DNA of 63,819 nucleotides, the filler included, from Pelomyxa schiedti (taxonomy: Eukaryota > Protista > Evosea): NCBI GenBank assembly GCA_020536535.1. It is 15 parts of 15 records of this genome, joined end to end, with 100 filler letters (N's around TTAATTAATTAA, not from the genome) between each part and the next. Parts side by side here need not be neighbours in the genome. Positions count along the whole stretch, not along the records: positions 13,034 to 14,488 come from JAHLWZ010002494.1; positions 14,589 to 19,612 come from JAHLWZ010001532.1; 13 more parts are not named here. One strand, given 5' to 3'. The notes below the pieces were generated by a model. The model saw nothing but the letters and a program-made list of their open reading frames with translations. It searched no databases and was not told where the DNA came from. The position numbers were made by a program, and so were the translations under genes. Below, piece after piece: positions 14,176 to 20,469 of the stretch; position 1 is the first letter of the stretch; each line of letters begins with the position of its first letter.

Positions 14176-15190
14176 GGGCGTGGCTGTGTGTGTTCCCGCT
14201 GCGATCTGTTGGCCTGGGTGTATTGCTATCAAAAAAGCAGATTACCATCAAAAGATCTACAAACACAAATAGAGCCCTCAACAGGGATTCTTCGATAGCA
14301 CTCCCGCGTACCTCGTGTGTCCTCAAACCGGTTTTTTTTTAATCTCTCTGGCTGTGGAGAAATTCCTGTGGTGTCAGACGTCAAGCAGGCGGAACTTATC
14401 AGAGAATCTGATTCGAGCAAGGGACAGAGCGGAAACAACATCCCACAATACAATGGTATCTGTGGTGCCAGTCACTTCCGGTTCCTCGNNNNNNNNNNNN
14501 NNNNNNNNNNNNNNNNNNNNNNNNNNNNNNNNTTAATTAATTAANNNNNNNNNNNNNNNNNNNNNNNNNNNNNNNNNNNNNNNNNNNNCTCCAACAGCAA
14601 CCCCGTGACAGATCAGTGTCCTCCCCCAACCTCACCTCCCTTTGACACCAACCAATGTAAACAAAAAAAAGATTCTGTGCCATAAAACATCTGCCCACTG
14701 ACAGCTTCTTGATTTCGTCGGGCCTCTTCCTTCAGCGTCATCATCGTCACCATCATCGCTTCAACGTCGACGGCCAACACGCGCCAGCAAAGTCGTGAGC
14801 GTCTAGCCGACGGCGTCGGGTTCGAGGCCACATACGATGACCGACCAGGTCCTCGCACTTGTGATTGGGAAGCACCCTCGTTGGCGCCGGCTGCCCGCTG
14901 ATGTGTGTGTCTGCCGAACTCAGTTATGGGACCATGGTTGTGGCGGCGGATATGGCAGCATCTGGTTCCCCCGTGGTCACCCTTCAACTGTGAAAAGAAA
15001 ACAACAATACAGCAACAACGATAAACAGGGCTCAGATATCCCACACTTTCCAGGGACAATTACCAGTCACCACACAACAGGTAATTTTAGTTACCCTTGT
15101 GTGGGCTTTTTTGTAATTTTTTACCCGAAGTCCTTGCAATCTACAACACAGTGCAACAACACAGTGCAACAACCAACGACAATTTGCAAT

Positions 15191-16492
15191 ATGCAAGAAA
15201 ATAACACCATTCCCCAACAGCAGCCTACACTAATAACGAGGACCCAGATCCGCATCACCTGCCAGGACCAGTTCGCGGCGCTCCTCGCGTCGTCGCACCC
15301 CCGGTGCGGCGCTGCCAGCCCCGCCCGGCACCTCGCGGCCGTCTCCCCGCTCATGCGCCACCTGTGGGCCGCCGCAGTCGTCGCCCCGGCCCGCTGGTTC
15401 GTCCTGGCACCCGTCCGTTTCTCCGAGGCGTCTTGGTGCGTCGCGCTCGCCGTGTCCCCCGCGACCCTCGGCGTGCTCCGCGGCCCACAGGCGACGCCGT
15501 CCCACCCGCTGTCGATGTGGCTGGGGCCCAGGGCGTGCCTGGCGCTCGAGAGGGGGGCCGGGCCCGAGGTGCAGTCGATGGCGCTGGTGCCCGCACCCCG
15601 CCTGGCTGTCCCGGGAATGCCACAGAGATCTGCTGTGCCAGACCCACAAGGGAAGTGGGTGCGTTTCCCTCGGGGGGACGACAATTTCGTGCCACCAGGT
15701 GGACGTGGTGTGAGGTACACAATGTTGTTGGATGCAAATTACAAGTGGGTGGTGGACTGCTTTGGGTACCTGGGGACTCTTTCCATCACGAAACTGCTGC
15801 ATCATGATGCACCAGGTGGGACGTCAGCCGAAGGGGGAGTTGGTGTGGTGGCTGGAACAACTGTTGCTGTTCAGTTGCCGACTTGGTTTCCAGGGCTTGG
15901 CAGGGCGGTGCTCAACAAGGTGGACCCTGATGAGGCATTGTTGCAGAGTTACTCGAATGGCGACTGTACTGCCTACTTCATCCTCGTGGATGTGCCACTT
16001 TCGCACAGCACCCAGATCCTCCAAGTTCTCAGTGTCACCAAGTTGAACTTTCCAGAGGGACTGAACTCTGTGTGTGCTCCACTGATTCTGAGGAAAAGCA
16101 ATGGTGATCCTGTGTTTGTAATTCCCACCAAGAGAAATGAAATCAATCTCGTCGAAGCTTCCACAGGAGTCAAATCTCTCCTTTCCTCAGACTGCTTTTG
16201 GCCGTGCCTCTCACAAGTGAGTGCCTCTGTCTTCTGCACATGGCACGGCAGCACCAAGTCCTGCACCATGTGGGACTGCAACAACAGTGCTCAACCTCTG
16301 TGGACCGTGAGAAGTACCTCCGAGGGGCTTTGCCTGAAGCACGTTGTTGGGGGCTCTGGGTTCTTGTTTGCAGTTGGTGACGATAAGATAGAGGTGATGG
16401 ACGCACTCTCTGGTTCTGTTCTCCTGTCAATTGAACCCTCATTCGGCACACACATGATCCATCCAGGTAGTTCTCTGTTGTGGGGAGAATAA
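15191..16492 (+). CDS. Lineage-expanded intronless DQF-family protein A (putative adaptor plus beta-rich domain)
   Basis: DQFAALLASSHPRCGAASPARHL...AVSPATLG...ANYKWVV...EVMDALSGSVLLSI. Start ATG inferred; the ORF is open from 14837. Confidence 0.75.
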   Translation: MQENNTIPQQQPTLITRTQIRITCQDQFAALLASSHPRCGAASPARHLAAVSPLMRHLWAAAVVAPARWFVLAPVRFSEASWCVALAVSPATLGVLRGPQATPSHPLSMWLGPRACLALERGAGPEVQSMALVPAPRLAVPGMPQRSAVPDPQGKWVRFPRGDDNFVPPGGRGVRYTMLLDANYKWVVDCFGYLGTLSITKLLHHDAPGGTSAEGGVGVVAGTTVAVQLPTWFPGLGRAVLNKVDPDEALLQSYSNGDCTAYFILVDVPLSHSTQILQVLSVTKLNFPEGLNSVCAPLILRKSNGDPVFVIPTKRNEINLVEASTGVKSLLSSDCFWPCLSQVSASVFCTWHGSTKSCTMWDCNNSAQPLWTVRSTSEGLCLKHVVGGSGFLFAVGDDKIEVMDALSGSVLLSIEPSFGTHMIHPGSSLLWGE

Positions 16493-16642
16493 AGAGAGTT
16501 CTTTGGGAGTCCCACGGAGAAACTTGATTACCAGTAATAAATAGTTGTCTAAATTGGCACAAGATTGCCGTAACAACGGTGCCAGAAATCAAAATTTATG
16601 TTTTGTGCCGCGGGGCGGTTGCCGCGGCGCCGCGGGGGCAGG

Positions 16643-16822
16643 GGTGAGGAGGAGCAAGCGGTACTCTCCCATTTGCTTTTTGTTGTCTTCTTCGCCACAA
16701 CTGTTCTGTTTGCTTTGTTTATTATTTTATTTATCGGAGTGGTGTTTTTGATTTTATTATTAAAATACAAATTAAATTTGATTTATTTTAAATAATTATA
16801 ATGTATTAACCATTATTATTAA
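16643..16822. repeat. Intergenic module, copy 1
   Basis: 180 nt matching 19434-19612 with one substitution and one 1-nt indel. A further shared 24-mer lies at 16598 and 19271. Confidence 0.9.
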
Positions 16823-17362
16823 AATATATATAATAATAAATTAAATTTAATGGTTATATATGCGTATTAATTACGCCTCCAGTTCTTTTTTCCATTCGAC
16901 CTGTATTAGAAGTCTCCGCACAACACCAGTTTTTACGCCGCTTTCAACCAGTATGTGGCTTCTTCTTTCTTCGTTTTCTCACGTAGGATAACTTAGGTGC
17001 CGGACGTGGTGTCTGTCATCCCAGCTGGCTAGGTAACTTCCTTCTGTATTTTATTATACTGGCGCGGTGGTATGTATCTTTTTTTTTTACAGCTGCGCCA
17101 GCTGCCGAGATGGCAACCGCCAACGCTCATCCCTCCCCCCTCGTCACCCCACTCAACGTACTAGGTACCAGAATGGGCACCAGGCCGAATTCACTCACCT
17201 CACACCTCTATGTACAAGCCTGAAGTCGAAATCGACTTACAAAAACGAGAAGGGCGGCTGTTTTGGTGTTTGGTCGTTGCGCCTTGTGACTTCGAAGTCA
17301 CTGCCTATTCCCGTAACAGCGGCCCAAAATTCTTCTCTCAAATGATAAGGCGGGCGTTTAGC

Positions 17363-19096
17363 ATGTCGGTGTTCCGTTTTAATGTGATGCCAGTCAGTGC
17401 CGCAGACCAATTCGTCGCACTGGCATGTGCATTTCTTCCCACTAACAACCACCTTTCTTCTTCTTTTTCACCAACCGCATCCACAGCCAGAACAACAACA
17501 GCAACAGCAACAGCAACAGCATCCGGAACAACAGCGACAACAGCAACAGCAACAGCAACACCAGATAAACCAAGGGGCATCCTGGGACGAGTTGCGGCCT
17601 TGTGCTCTCATTCTGGTGGTGGTAGCGGCTCTACTACATCTAGTGTCACTACAACAACAAGTGCAAGTGCAAGTGTCGGCGGCTCAGTTTCTAAATCGTC
17701 ATCAGCATCATGTTCTAATAATAAGAGTTGTGCGGGGTTATGCTGCATTGGAATGTTGCCACAATGGGTTGCGGTGGAGTGCATTGGAAAGAGGTGGGTG
17801 CTGGCCACTGAGAGGGTGGCGGTTGCTACATTCCCACTTGATCCTGCAAATACATTGCAGGACATTAATATTATCTTCAGCCTGTCACACACACTGGGCC
17901 TTGTGCAACAGCCCACTTCTGTGCGGCACCCGGGGTGTTACGGTGAGTGCATCGGGTGGGTAAGGCCAGACAGGGTAGTGATGTGCAGTGATTATCACAG
18001 TCCCCTGTACACGGTCTCCATTGAGGACCCCTTCTCTCACCCAGTTCAAGAGCTGATGACAAGGTGCAAGAAAGTGCCACTGGGAGTGTGCAACAGGAGG
18101 TGGATTGTGATGTCACCTTCAGGGCATTCCCGCACTTTGCTCAGAGTTTGGAGGGTTCTGGATGGTGGTAGGGGCTCAGCGTCACCTGAGTGCGTGGCTG
18201 TGCAGTGTGAGGCCCTGACTGGGCTGAAGTCAATGAAGTTCTTCAGCTCCATAAGTGAGTACGATTATGAGTCTGACACTCTGGAAGTTATTGTGAGGAG
18301 GGATGAAGGTTCAAATGTGTTCCTTTGCGTGATGCACCTGGAATTGAATTCCGCTGTGACAGGAAAGCTTGAGCCAACTGTGATCACAGAGTGCAATCTG
18401 TCAAGGGCAGGGGTCACTCCTGACCATCTGTTCCTCAGCCCACTCTTTGACAGAGCAGAAGGGAAGTATTACATCCCATTCAAAGATGGAGAAGCCCAGA
18501 AGCTGTTGGACATGAGCAACGGGAAGATTGCCACATTCCTGCCAGACAGCAGGGGACTGCAGGTGAAGGCAGTTGATGAGTCTCACTTGATCAGAATTGA
18601 TTCTGAGCGCACCTGGGTTTATTCCTTGTCATCACTCTGGAAAGCTACTGCCAATCCTGATCCATCCATTTCGGCACTGGAACAGGTTCCCAGCAAGAAG
18701 GAGGGTTTTCTCAAACAGCACAAGGAGCCAAAGAAGAGGTTCAACAACGTACATAACGTTGTTAAACCGTGTATAACACACCCACACCCACCTCGAGCCC
18801 AATCAGTTGTTGCCGGGTGTGGCCTCTTGGTATTCAGTTCTATTACCGTACCACCACCACTGGACACCTACGAGGTGTTGGAACATCCACCCTCACACAC
18901 TCCCTTCCCTCACTCCCGTGAAGCAGGGTTCAACCTACAGTACAGCAGCACAGAACCAAGAATGATCACATCAACACATGTATTTGTTGATGCACTGTCA
19001 GGTGCCCCCCTGTTCACCATCAGGTTTCCACTTGGAGTATTCCCACATTCCATTACCCCAGTTCCATTCAAAACCCCTGTGGTACTGTGGGACTGA
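17363..19096 (+). CDS. Lineage-expanded intronless DQF-family protein B
   Basis: ADQFVALACAF...poly-T/S insert...FSLSHTLGLV...CNRRWIV...FVDALSGAPLFTI. Single ORF; start ATG inferred. Confidence 0.75.
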   Translation: MSVFRFNVMPVSAADQFVALACAFLPTNNHLSSSFSPTASTARTTTATATATASGTTATTATATATPDKPRGILGRVAALCSHSGGGSGSTTSSVTTTTSASASVGGSVSKSSSASCSNNKSCAGLCCIGMLPQWVAVECIGKRWVLATERVAVATFPLDPANTLQDINIIFSLSHTLGLVQQPTSVRHPGCYGECIGWVRPDRVVMCSDYHSPLYTVSIEDPFSHPVQELMTRCKKVPLGVCNRRWIVMSPSGHSRTLLRVWRVLDGGRGSASPECVAVQCEALTGLKSMKFFSSISEYDYESDTLEVIVRRDEGSNVFLCVMHLELNSAVTGKLEPTVITECNLSRAGVTPDHLFLSPLFDRAEGKYYIPFKDGEAQKLLDMSNGKIATFLPDSRGLQVKAVDESHLIRIDSERTWVYSLSSLWKATANPDPSISALEQVPSKKEGFLKQHKEPKKRFNNVHNVVKPCITHPHPPRAQSVVAGCGLLVFSSITVPPPLDTYEVLEHPPSHTPFPHSREAGFNLQYSSTEPRMITSTHVFVDALSGAPLFTIRFPLGVFPHSITPVPFKTPVVLWD

Positions 19097-19433
19097 GGGA
19101 AAATTATCGTTGGACAGTGTCTATGTACGTATTTACTCCCTTTGCACTGCCGCTCGTTGGCACGCAAAGAACCCCGAAAAAATACACCGGGGGGCGAGTC
19201 AAATGAGAAAAACAGAATTTTTTAGTGAGCAAGGCAGGGTGAAGCGGCCCGATCTTGCCGGGATTTGTTGATGTTTTGTGCCGCGGGGCGGTTGGCGCGG
19301 CGTGTGTGTTCGTCGAATCGGGTCTCGCCGCGGCTGCGCGGCACTGACATAAATGGGTTTTGGCGATTGTTCAGTGGCTTGTGTCTTTTCATTATCACAC
19401 AAGAAATCGACGAGGGGAGGCCATGCCGCCAGT

Positions 19434-19612
19434 GGTGAGGAGGAGCAAGCGGTACTCTCCCATTTGCTTTTTGTTGTCTTCTTCGCCGCAACTGTTCTGT
19501 TTGCTTGTTTATTATTTTATTTATCGGAGTGGTGTTTTTGATTTTATTATTAAAATACAAATTAAATTTGATTTATTTTAAATAATTATAATGTATTAAC
19601 CATTATTATTAA
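19434..19612. repeat. Intergenic module, copy 2 (contig breaks inside it)
   Basis: Near-identical to 16643-16822. Confidence 0.9.
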
Positions 19613-19712: not shown

Positions 19713-20469
19713 GGGAGAGTTAACAGAGACTTACAAAATGGTGTGACACCAAACTGATGGTAAGTGCTGATTTTCCAACGGCACCCGGTCCCAACACCAC
19801 TATTTTGAATACTTGTTGTCCGTTGGCAGTGTCAGGATCTACAGTCGCAGACGCGGTTTTACTCTGTAGCGTGGGGAAAAAAACCAGTCAGTGTGTTGTC
19901 GGGAAACAGTGGCGCGCAAAGGTGACCTTCTTCGGCATTGCTAGTATTATAATTTAAGATCCGCACGTGACGACGTCGGTATGTGCTGCCGGTGTTGATG
20001 TTACTTTTTTTTTTTTTATTATCTTAGGTTTGAACGCCGTTCAAACTCGGCCTTTTTTTGGAATTGAGTTTCACGCTAATCATACCCGAGTCAAAGCACA
20101 CTTCGCCGAACAAGGAAGCCACAGCAGAAACTAAAAAAGCCAGGAAAGCACCTTCGTGATAAGTTGATAAGGACTGTTGCAGTCCAACAACAAGCACCAC
20201 GTCATGATTCGCGGGGGCTGGGGGTGACCGCTCCCATAATTCGGCGTTGGGTGGAGTGTTACTACATTGCGCTGAAGGATGACGAATGGCTGTGGTTGTT
20301 GGTGTTGGCGTTGATGTGGAGGGTCACGAACACGTCCTTCGCACGTGATATGGTGAAGTCATCGGGGTTCGAGTCCAGGTACTCGTCCATGGCTGCGGCC
20401 ACGTCGTGCGCAAGTGTCGGGGTGATTGCGGATTGTGGGTGCAATTGCGACGTCTGGAATTGTGATTGA
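19713..20469. repeat. Variant copy of 35258-36029 (Ras 5' exons plus adenylate cyclase C-terminus); probable alternative haplotype
   Basis: Colinear match with scattered SNPs and 10-nt and 6-nt indels. Both copies end at the same base before a gap. Confidence 0.85.

Follow-up and report, generated by a model that had tools for sequence, protein, structure and literature searches.

F-box/WD40 (FBXW) receptors of Skp1-cullin-F-box (SCF) ubiquitin ligases consist of a short N-terminal three-helix module followed by a beta-propeller, and the F-box expansions of nematodes (FBXA) and plants are large, fast-evolving families with tandem copies, pseudogenes, a conserved head and a variable body. Propellers of a seven-bladed, non-WD type occur in the bacterial periplasmic proteins or enzymes YncE, the methylamine/aromatic amine dehydrogenase heavy chains and NirF, and propellers are also found in the carotenoid cleavage oxygenases (VP14, ACO, RPE65), which are defined by four iron-binding His residues. 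We describe here a gene family of Pelomyxa schiedti, an anaerobic amoeba with several prokaryotic (bacterial, archaeal) endosymbionts, which resembles each of these systems in some respects. The window, i.e. the whole stretch of DNA analysed, comprises 63,819 nucleotides, filler included, and the piece examined (positions 14589-19612) is contig JAHLWZ010001532.1. It carries two long, intact open reading frames (ORFs) in tandem on the + strand, ORF1 (14837-16492, 551 amino acids, aa) and ORF2 (17210-19096, 628 aa). Like FBXW receptors, their products are predicted to place a short helical module directly before a propeller. Unlike these receptors, the Pelomyxa family yields neither an F-box profile match nor a WD40 or Kelch signature, its module is longer and sometimes split by a disordered insertion, and a single species of amoeba accounts for the whole family in the databases searched.

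Family membership and relationship of the two ORFs

ORF1 and ORF2 belong to a large, undescribed gene family which is restricted to P. schiedti as far as the databases reach. A search (hmmsearch) of 1.84 billion cluster representatives with a hidden Markov model (HMM) of the ORF2 subfamily (alignment A1, four sequences) found 91 clusters at E<=1e-3, with E at or below 1e-30 for 38 of these, and a second profile brought in additional members. The organism was looked up for 30 of the 91 clusters, weighted to the weakest matches, and all 30 contained hypothetical proteins of P. schiedti. All 16 distinct named matches of a word-based search came from the same species, including some that the A1 profile had missed. 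The 95 proteins retrieved contained 96 N-terminal modules (N-modules), and many public gene models contain two to four family units. The Pfam scan of both window ORFs produced sub-threshold noise only, and the family is not mentioned in the literature consulted on the P. schiedti genome. An earlier note, made from the sequence of the window alone, had proposed an expanded gene family; in agreement with this proposal, the family is large and lineage-restricted, and it duplicates and includes dead copies. We put the probability of the descriptive reading, in which a genuine family restricted to Pelomyxa multiplies by duplication and combines a helical head with a propeller body, at about 0.8. 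The family is new at the sequence level, but it uses a very common fold and follows a familiar evolutionary pattern.

As judged from sequence profiles, ORF1 and ORF2 are remotely related. BLASTP gave no significant match between them, and only profiles joined the two: those of the ORF1 subfamily (A2) and the ORF2 subfamily (A1) were aligned by hhalign with a probability of 94% (E 1.3e-7, 273 columns). The middle unit of protein P0007 was matched by both HMMs (A1 at 2e-15, A2 at 2e-32) and has an A1-type unit on each side, which is a mixed tandem order as in the window. In an alignment of 34 sequences (A5), the motifs A-R-[DS]-Q-F-x-A-L, R-C-G-x-x-S-P, I-G-R-x-W-V, V-S-x-T-L-G, G-W, N-x-[RK]-W-x-V, V-D-L-E and a terminal D-A-x-[ST]-G follow one another in this order. 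The two ORFs share the succession DQF-x-AL, an RCG or LP...IGKRWV segment, [FV]S[VL]S-x-TLG, N-x-[RK]W-[IV]V, VD-L-E and the D-A-x-[ST]-G hairpin. The ordered motif set listed in the earlier note is present in both ORFs, and its description of the regions between the motifs as barely alignable proved apt, with profiles uniting both loci.

Predicted fold and identity of the N-terminal module

AlphaFold2 (AF2) models were obtained with alignment depths of 38 sequences for ORF2 and 34 for ORF1, the latter numbered from a protein starting at 15245. The ORF2 model (predicted TM-score, pTM, 0.71; mean predicted local distance difference test score, pLDDT, 72) has helices at aa 7-16, 122-125 and 128-140 and a disordered stretch at aa 24-114, followed by an all-beta body. 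The same plan was found for ORF1 (pTM 0.69, mean pLDDT 68), with helices at aa 6-17, 28-31 and 34-45, a disordered stretch at aa 88-159 and then an all-beta body. Both models superposed on seven-bladed propellers. With VIA-align, residues 142-568 of ORF2 gave Z-scores of 10-11 over 260-294 residues of solved seven-bladed propellers, among them amine dehydrogenase heavy chains, the lectin PVL and NirF, and ORF1 gave Z 14-17 over 250-300 residues (root-mean-square deviation, rmsd, 4-5) with carotenoid oxygenases, integrin alpha and many WD40 proteins. All of the 50 Foldseek matches listed per model were propellers, with YncE, MADH and NirF high among those listed for ORF2. The architecture suggested in the earlier note, a short helical N-terminal module joined to a variable beta-propeller, was therefore seen in the models of both ORFs as well as in the structure searches.

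The body is predicted to be a generic seven-bladed beta-propeller, since no one family stands out in a long list of near-tied propellers. In the ESM Atlas, the shape search returned generic propellers only (TM-score <0.5) and the feature search with whole ORF2 returned nothing above 0.9, DCAF17 at 0.88 being a weak lead only; no usable match was obtained with the ORF1 N-module. The best match of the whole-family profile to PDB sequences was a BTB protein at E 0.11, which was taken as noise, and Pfam WD40 profiles matched neither the window ORFs nor any of 54 members. YncE, the methylamine/aromatic amine dehydrogenase heavy chain and NirF are among the best structural matches of ORF2 (Z 10-11, 277-293 residues) and have a similar blade hairpin, D-x-x-T-G. 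In contrast to these proteins, with which they share no sequence similarity, the window proteins lack a signal peptide-like N-terminus and have an extra conserved helical head. The carotenoid cleavage oxygenases were the top VIA-align matches of ORF1 (Z 16-17, about 295 residues, rmsd 4.2-4.5, helices included), but their Z-scores were only 1-2 above those of many unrelated propellers. In A5, the residues S, G, W, R, T, L, D and D occupy columns that are invariant or almost so. His is not among them, nor is any invariant acidic catalytic residue, and membership in the carotenoid cleavage oxygenases was rejected for lack of the His residues.

The N-module is about 45 residues long and is predicted to form a helix, an RCG loop, a short helix and a further helix. 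Mean pairwise identity in the broad alignment is 36% in the N-module and 19.5% in the propeller, in line with the hypervariable body proposed in the earlier note. In ORF2, a T/A/S-rich insertion of about 90-97 aa lies between helix 1 and helix 2, and an HMM built without ORF2 matched the two halves of its N-module separately (i-E 7e-4 and 3.5e-4). At the same point of the N-module, the unit at 19957-21579 of L003, another family-bearing contig, has an A/P/S-rich insertion (about 20160-20400) of different composition.

The identity of this module as an F-box is not supported by sequence. Pfam F-box models (PF00646, PF12937 and relatives) gave no match to 27 isolated N-modules even with the threshold relaxed to E<=10, and none to 54 full-length members (E<=1e-3) or to the two window ORFs (E<=1). 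The search of PDB sequences with the N-module profile returned no F-box chain, the best match being REDD1 at E 0.28, which we took as noise. A three-helix module does precede the putative binding domain, as in F-box proteins, the agreement being one of topology only. The BC-box has the helical consensus [APST]-L-x-x-x-C-x-x-x-[AILV]. The N-module consensus is I-V-G-R-C-G-x-x-S, and a BC-box/SOCS-box identity is not supported, because in both models the conserved Cys falls in the loop that connects helices 1 and 2 and because Ser is found at +4. The F-box- or BC-box-like nature ascribed to the module in the earlier note was not borne out by these results.

Spread, selection and possible function

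The P. schiedti genome contains 7.43 introns per gene (PMC8887013). Family members are uninterrupted single ORFs, whereas the models of adjacent genes span 1.2-2.5 times their coding length, so that the genes are indeed intronless amid intron-rich neighbours. Tandem arrays are found in the window (two copies) and on other family-bearing P. schiedti contigs, with three in a row plus one more on L003, two on L004 and four, on both strands, on L001 (contig JAHLWZ010000969). Positions 15217-17816 of the window are 91% identical at the nucleotide level to L001 10282-12796 over 2.6 kb, up to the end of L001, and the region of the window upstream of 15217 is unrelated. As this duplicated unit extends from ORF1 across the spacer into the beginning of ORF2, it points to segmental or tandem duplication at the DNA level. 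The pair may have arisen by segmental duplication, or it may reflect diverged haplotypes or nucleus-specific alleles in the single-cell assembly. No poly(A) tract follows either ORF. Retroposition, which had been deduced from the lack of introns, was rejected as the way in which these copies spread because the duplicated DNA continues through intergenic sequence into the beginning of the following gene and because the ORFs have no poly(A).

Decaying copies are also present. The dead copy at L001 2782-3419 (-) keeps helix 1 but then has a stop; it is internally deleted and frameshifted just past the PRC of the N-module, so that its C-terminal half is read in a different frame. The copy at L002 2818-3852 (-) has lost about 150 aa in frame, and that at L002 3965-5046 (-) is interrupted by an assembly gap. 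Of the tandem and frameshifted copies described earlier, tandem and degenerate ones were found in the related contigs, but both copies in the contig examined are intact.

The ratio of nonsynonymous to synonymous substitution rates (dN/dS) was estimated gene-wide for recent pairs by the Nei-Gojobori method. It was 0.355 for ORF1 and its L001 copy (dS 0.043), 0.55 for P0003 and its L004 duplicate (dS 0.105) and 0.12, with few changes, for the N-terminal part of ORF2 and its L001 copy (dS 0.028). The genes are constrained, since coding identity in the window/L001 duplicate is about 97% vs 86% in the spacer, and this constraint, which we would describe as purifying to relaxed, is looser than in typical housekeeping genes. 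No gene-wide signal of diversifying selection was seen in these pairs.

The working mechanism that we infer as the most likely one is that of a common handle combined with a variable binding propeller. The family itself expands as an intronless gene is duplicated at the DNA level, in tandem or segmentally, and copies are lost by deletion and frameshift. The conserved head would be the common handle, which either tethers each paralogue to a partner common to all or keeps the propeller shut, the variable propeller would provide a ligand-binding surface, and the family would form a repertoire of binding or adaptor proteins. The adaptor or immune role is putative, and the version with a cullin-RING ligase adaptor, for example Skp1, as the common partner is tentative. 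Several points weigh against the handle-and-propeller mechanism. The confidence of the AF2 models is moderate (mean pLDDT 68-72). The N-module is itself modelled with fair confidence, which suggests that it packs on the rest of the protein, and it may be a mere propeller cap; carotenoid oxygenases, which have N-terminal helices on the propeller, align to ORF1 from residue 1. The recent pairs show no sign of diversifying selection at the whole-gene level (dN/dS <1), and the window copies and those on L001 could be diverged haplotypes of one locus and not paralogues.

A rather doubtful alternative is that the N-module represents an F-box that has diverged strongly, or some other box that binds Skp1 or Elongin C, and that the proteins are an expanded set of SCF-type substrate receptors like those of nematodes and plants, possibly directed against microbes or managing the endosymbionts. 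The predicted three-helix module of about 45 aa directly N-terminal to the propeller has the canonical position and size of an F-box, the conserved head and variable body fit this reading, and Cdc4/Skp1 and FBXW8 are among the Foldseek matches listed, alongside hundreds of other propellers. F-boxes end in C-K-R-W, and the hydrophobic pattern of the module ends in [GK]R-x-W-V, which is loosely similar. The empty Pfam and PDB profile searches argue against this assignment, as do the span from helix 1 to the Trp, which is about 10 residues longer than in the F-box, the disordered insertion of about 90 aa which splits helix 1 from helices 2-3 in the ORF2 subfamily, and dN/dS values of 0.35-0.55, not >1. 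The helices might instead be an integral cap or closure of the propeller. The proteins would then be soluble and bind ligands as lectin-like, scaffold or enzyme-like proteins, and would have neither a ubiquitin link nor a modular adaptor logic, a reading in which we have low confidence. It would account for helix 1 of ORF2, the pLDDT of which is about 80 despite the disordered linker of 90 residues, suggesting docking on the folded body, and it agrees with structural matches that include N-terminal helices (carotenoid oxygenases, amine dehydrogenase heavy chains) and with the lectin propellers PVL, PLL and CV39L among the matches. The terminal D-A-x-T-G hairpin also resembles the blade motif of YVTN-type bacterial propellers, and YncE, MADH and NirF rank high in Foldseek. 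The head is, however, about twice as conserved as the propeller, which is beyond the need of a mere cap, A5 shows no invariant His or acidic catalytic residue, and searches of Pfam, the PDB and the cluster representatives gave no sequence match to any lectin or enzyme family.

An origin of the genes as cargo or remnants of a mobile element, or from a burst of retroposition, with their intronlessness and a neighbouring repeat (repeat R, see below) reflecting element-mediated spread and not a cellular function, is very improbable. In its favour are the intronless members in an intron-rich genome and a 0.9 kb repeat found beside both window genes, next to the L001 copy and at contig ends. Yet Pfam found no reverse transcriptase, integrase or transposase in any of 54 members, the ORFs are not followed by poly(A) tails, the duplicates carry intergenic DNA and the starts of neighbouring genes, repeat R adjoins unrelated genes and was not seen at the L003 and L004 arrays, and the coding sequence is constrained. 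Returning to the common handle, its boldest form, which we consider unlikely, is that the RCG three-helix head is a new docking box, unrelated to F-box, BC-box and BTB, which links more than 100 hypervariable propellers to one machine, for instance a ubiquitin ligase or a different effector. If so, the family would be a private recognition repertoire, perhaps for the surveillance or management of the bacterial and archaeal endosymbionts. To our knowledge, almost nothing is known on how P. schiedti recognises or controls these endosymbionts. An intronless, species-private family of more than 100 copies shows an architecture that is used elsewhere in eukaryotes for expandable recognition repertoires, and if its head binds a common partner, it would provide both a new adaptor box and a tractable entry into amoeba-symbiont biology.

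Features of the contig, repeat R and public gene models

Table 1 Features of contig JAHLWZ010001532.1 (positions in the window; CDS, coding sequence; UTR, untranslated region; GC, guanine plus cytosine content)
Feature	Position	Strand	Description and evidence
Open upstream extension of ORF1	14837..15191	+	Contains DQVLAL..HPR; probably 5' UTR or intergenic
ORF1, probable CDS, 433 aa	15192..16492	+	ORF1/Pelo_14907 subfamily; 97% identity to Pelo_14907 (P0004)
ORF1 N-module, QDQFAALL + PRCG-x-x-SP	15245..15409	+	AF2 model; N-module alignment; HMM 56.6 bits (ORF1 in alignment)
ORF1 predicted seven-bladed beta-propeller	15392..16435	+	AF2 pTM 0.69; VIA-align; Foldseek
ORF1 P/A/G-rich insertion, GC 67-71%	15506..15721	+	Composition; pLDDT <50 at aa 88-159; predicted disordered
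ORF1 C-terminal hairpin, I-E-V-M-D-A-L-S-G...	16388..16432	+	Last blade strands, aa 382-386 and 392-396; D386 nearly invariant
Repeat R, copy 1	16595..17240	+	Non-coding, interspersed; extends into first codons of long ORF2
ORF2, longest ORF, 628 aa	17210..19096	+	Pelo_10611, Pelo_18706 and Pelo_2384 at 33-38% identity
ORF2 N-module helix 1, DQFVALACAF	17399..17428	+	AF2 helix aa 7-16, pLDDT 78-84; HMM i-E 7e-4
T/A/S-rich low-complexity insertion splitting ORF2 N-module	17450..17722	+	pLDDT <50 at aa 24-114
ORF2 N-module helices 2-3, LPQWVAVECIGKRW	17744..17800	+	AF2 helices aa 122-125 and 128-140; HMM i-E 3.5e-4
ORF2 predicted seven-bladed beta-propeller	17804..19084	+	AF2 pTM 0.71; 202 residues with pLDDT >=90; VIA-align; Foldseek
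ORF2 terminal V-D-A-L-S-G hairpin	18968-19027	+	Within propeller
Repeat R, copy 2	19183..19612	+	Ends at contig end

Of the about nine loci noted earlier, the piece covers two (15191 and 17363), the other seven being located elsewhere in the window. The ORF scan confirmed long, intact, tandem + strand ORFs at these two loci, which agree with the ATGs at 15192 and 17364. ATG 15192 encodes the Met kept in the ORF1 paralogues (M-Q-E-x-N), and the paralogous contigs become similar to the piece only from 15157-15217; the upstream extension of ORF1 is for these reasons probably non-coding. The DQVLAL..HPR motif at 14837 had been regarded as a relic of the family, a view which did not hold, as it scored -2.5 bits (E 43) against the N-module HMM and the stretch is not shared with the paralogous contigs. 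The true start of ORF2 is probably the ATG at 17343, 17364 or 17387, with a CDS of about 17364-19096; a later ATG is favoured because 17210-17240 falls within repeat R.

In the word-based search, ORF1 also matched two truncated relatives, P0005 and P0006. Its P/A/G-rich stretch is a subfamily-specific insertion relative to the other members in the 34-sequence alignment. The first third of ORF1 (15189-15788) has a GC content of 67-71% vs about 51% in the remaining gene, and the L002 paralogue of ORF1 lacks most of this GC-rich stretch. The insertion in the ORF2 N-module derives partly from an imperfect ACA/GCA trinucleotide repeat (repeat families D1 and D3), and the IGKRWV motif is invariant across the A1 alignment.

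Each window ORF is followed by a copy of repeat R, which is about 0.9 kb long, GC-rich towards its 5' end and very rich in AT in its core, where there is a small palindrome. Further copies are found at L001 8479-9350, 9880-10177 (-) and 11624-12237 and at L002 1-658 (-), and the repeat often lies at contig ends. The unrelated genes which it adjoins are a kinase gene in L001 and a non-family gene in L002. As the Rfam and tRNA scans of the piece gave no match, repeat R cannot be recognised as an RNA gene or as a short interspersed nuclear element derived from a tRNA. The public model P0004 takes part of it as coding (aa 2-58).

Other public models of family members are also affected. The annotation of GCA_020536535.1 fuses tandem family copies into models of 1000-1300 aa (L003 10001-14138; P0007, P0008, P0014, P0050, P0061), and in the model at L003 18706-24036 a family copy is joined to the adjacent MINDY gene. 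In this fusion, the one that was inspected, the family unit (L003 19957-21579) forms an entire ORF that ends in a stop codon of its own, separate from MINDY; the fusion to MINDY was rejected as a ubiquitin link on these grounds. The DUSP and TRAF fusions were rejected as such links as well, the fused domains being an unrelated assortment (TBC/TLD, PIG-F, GNAT, RRM, BSD, CENP-C). The remaining fused-domain models (including TBC/TLD, PIG-F and TRAF) are probably also mergers that create spurious domain architectures, and mis-modelled members of this kind distort the domain-architecture statistics for the P. schiedti genome.

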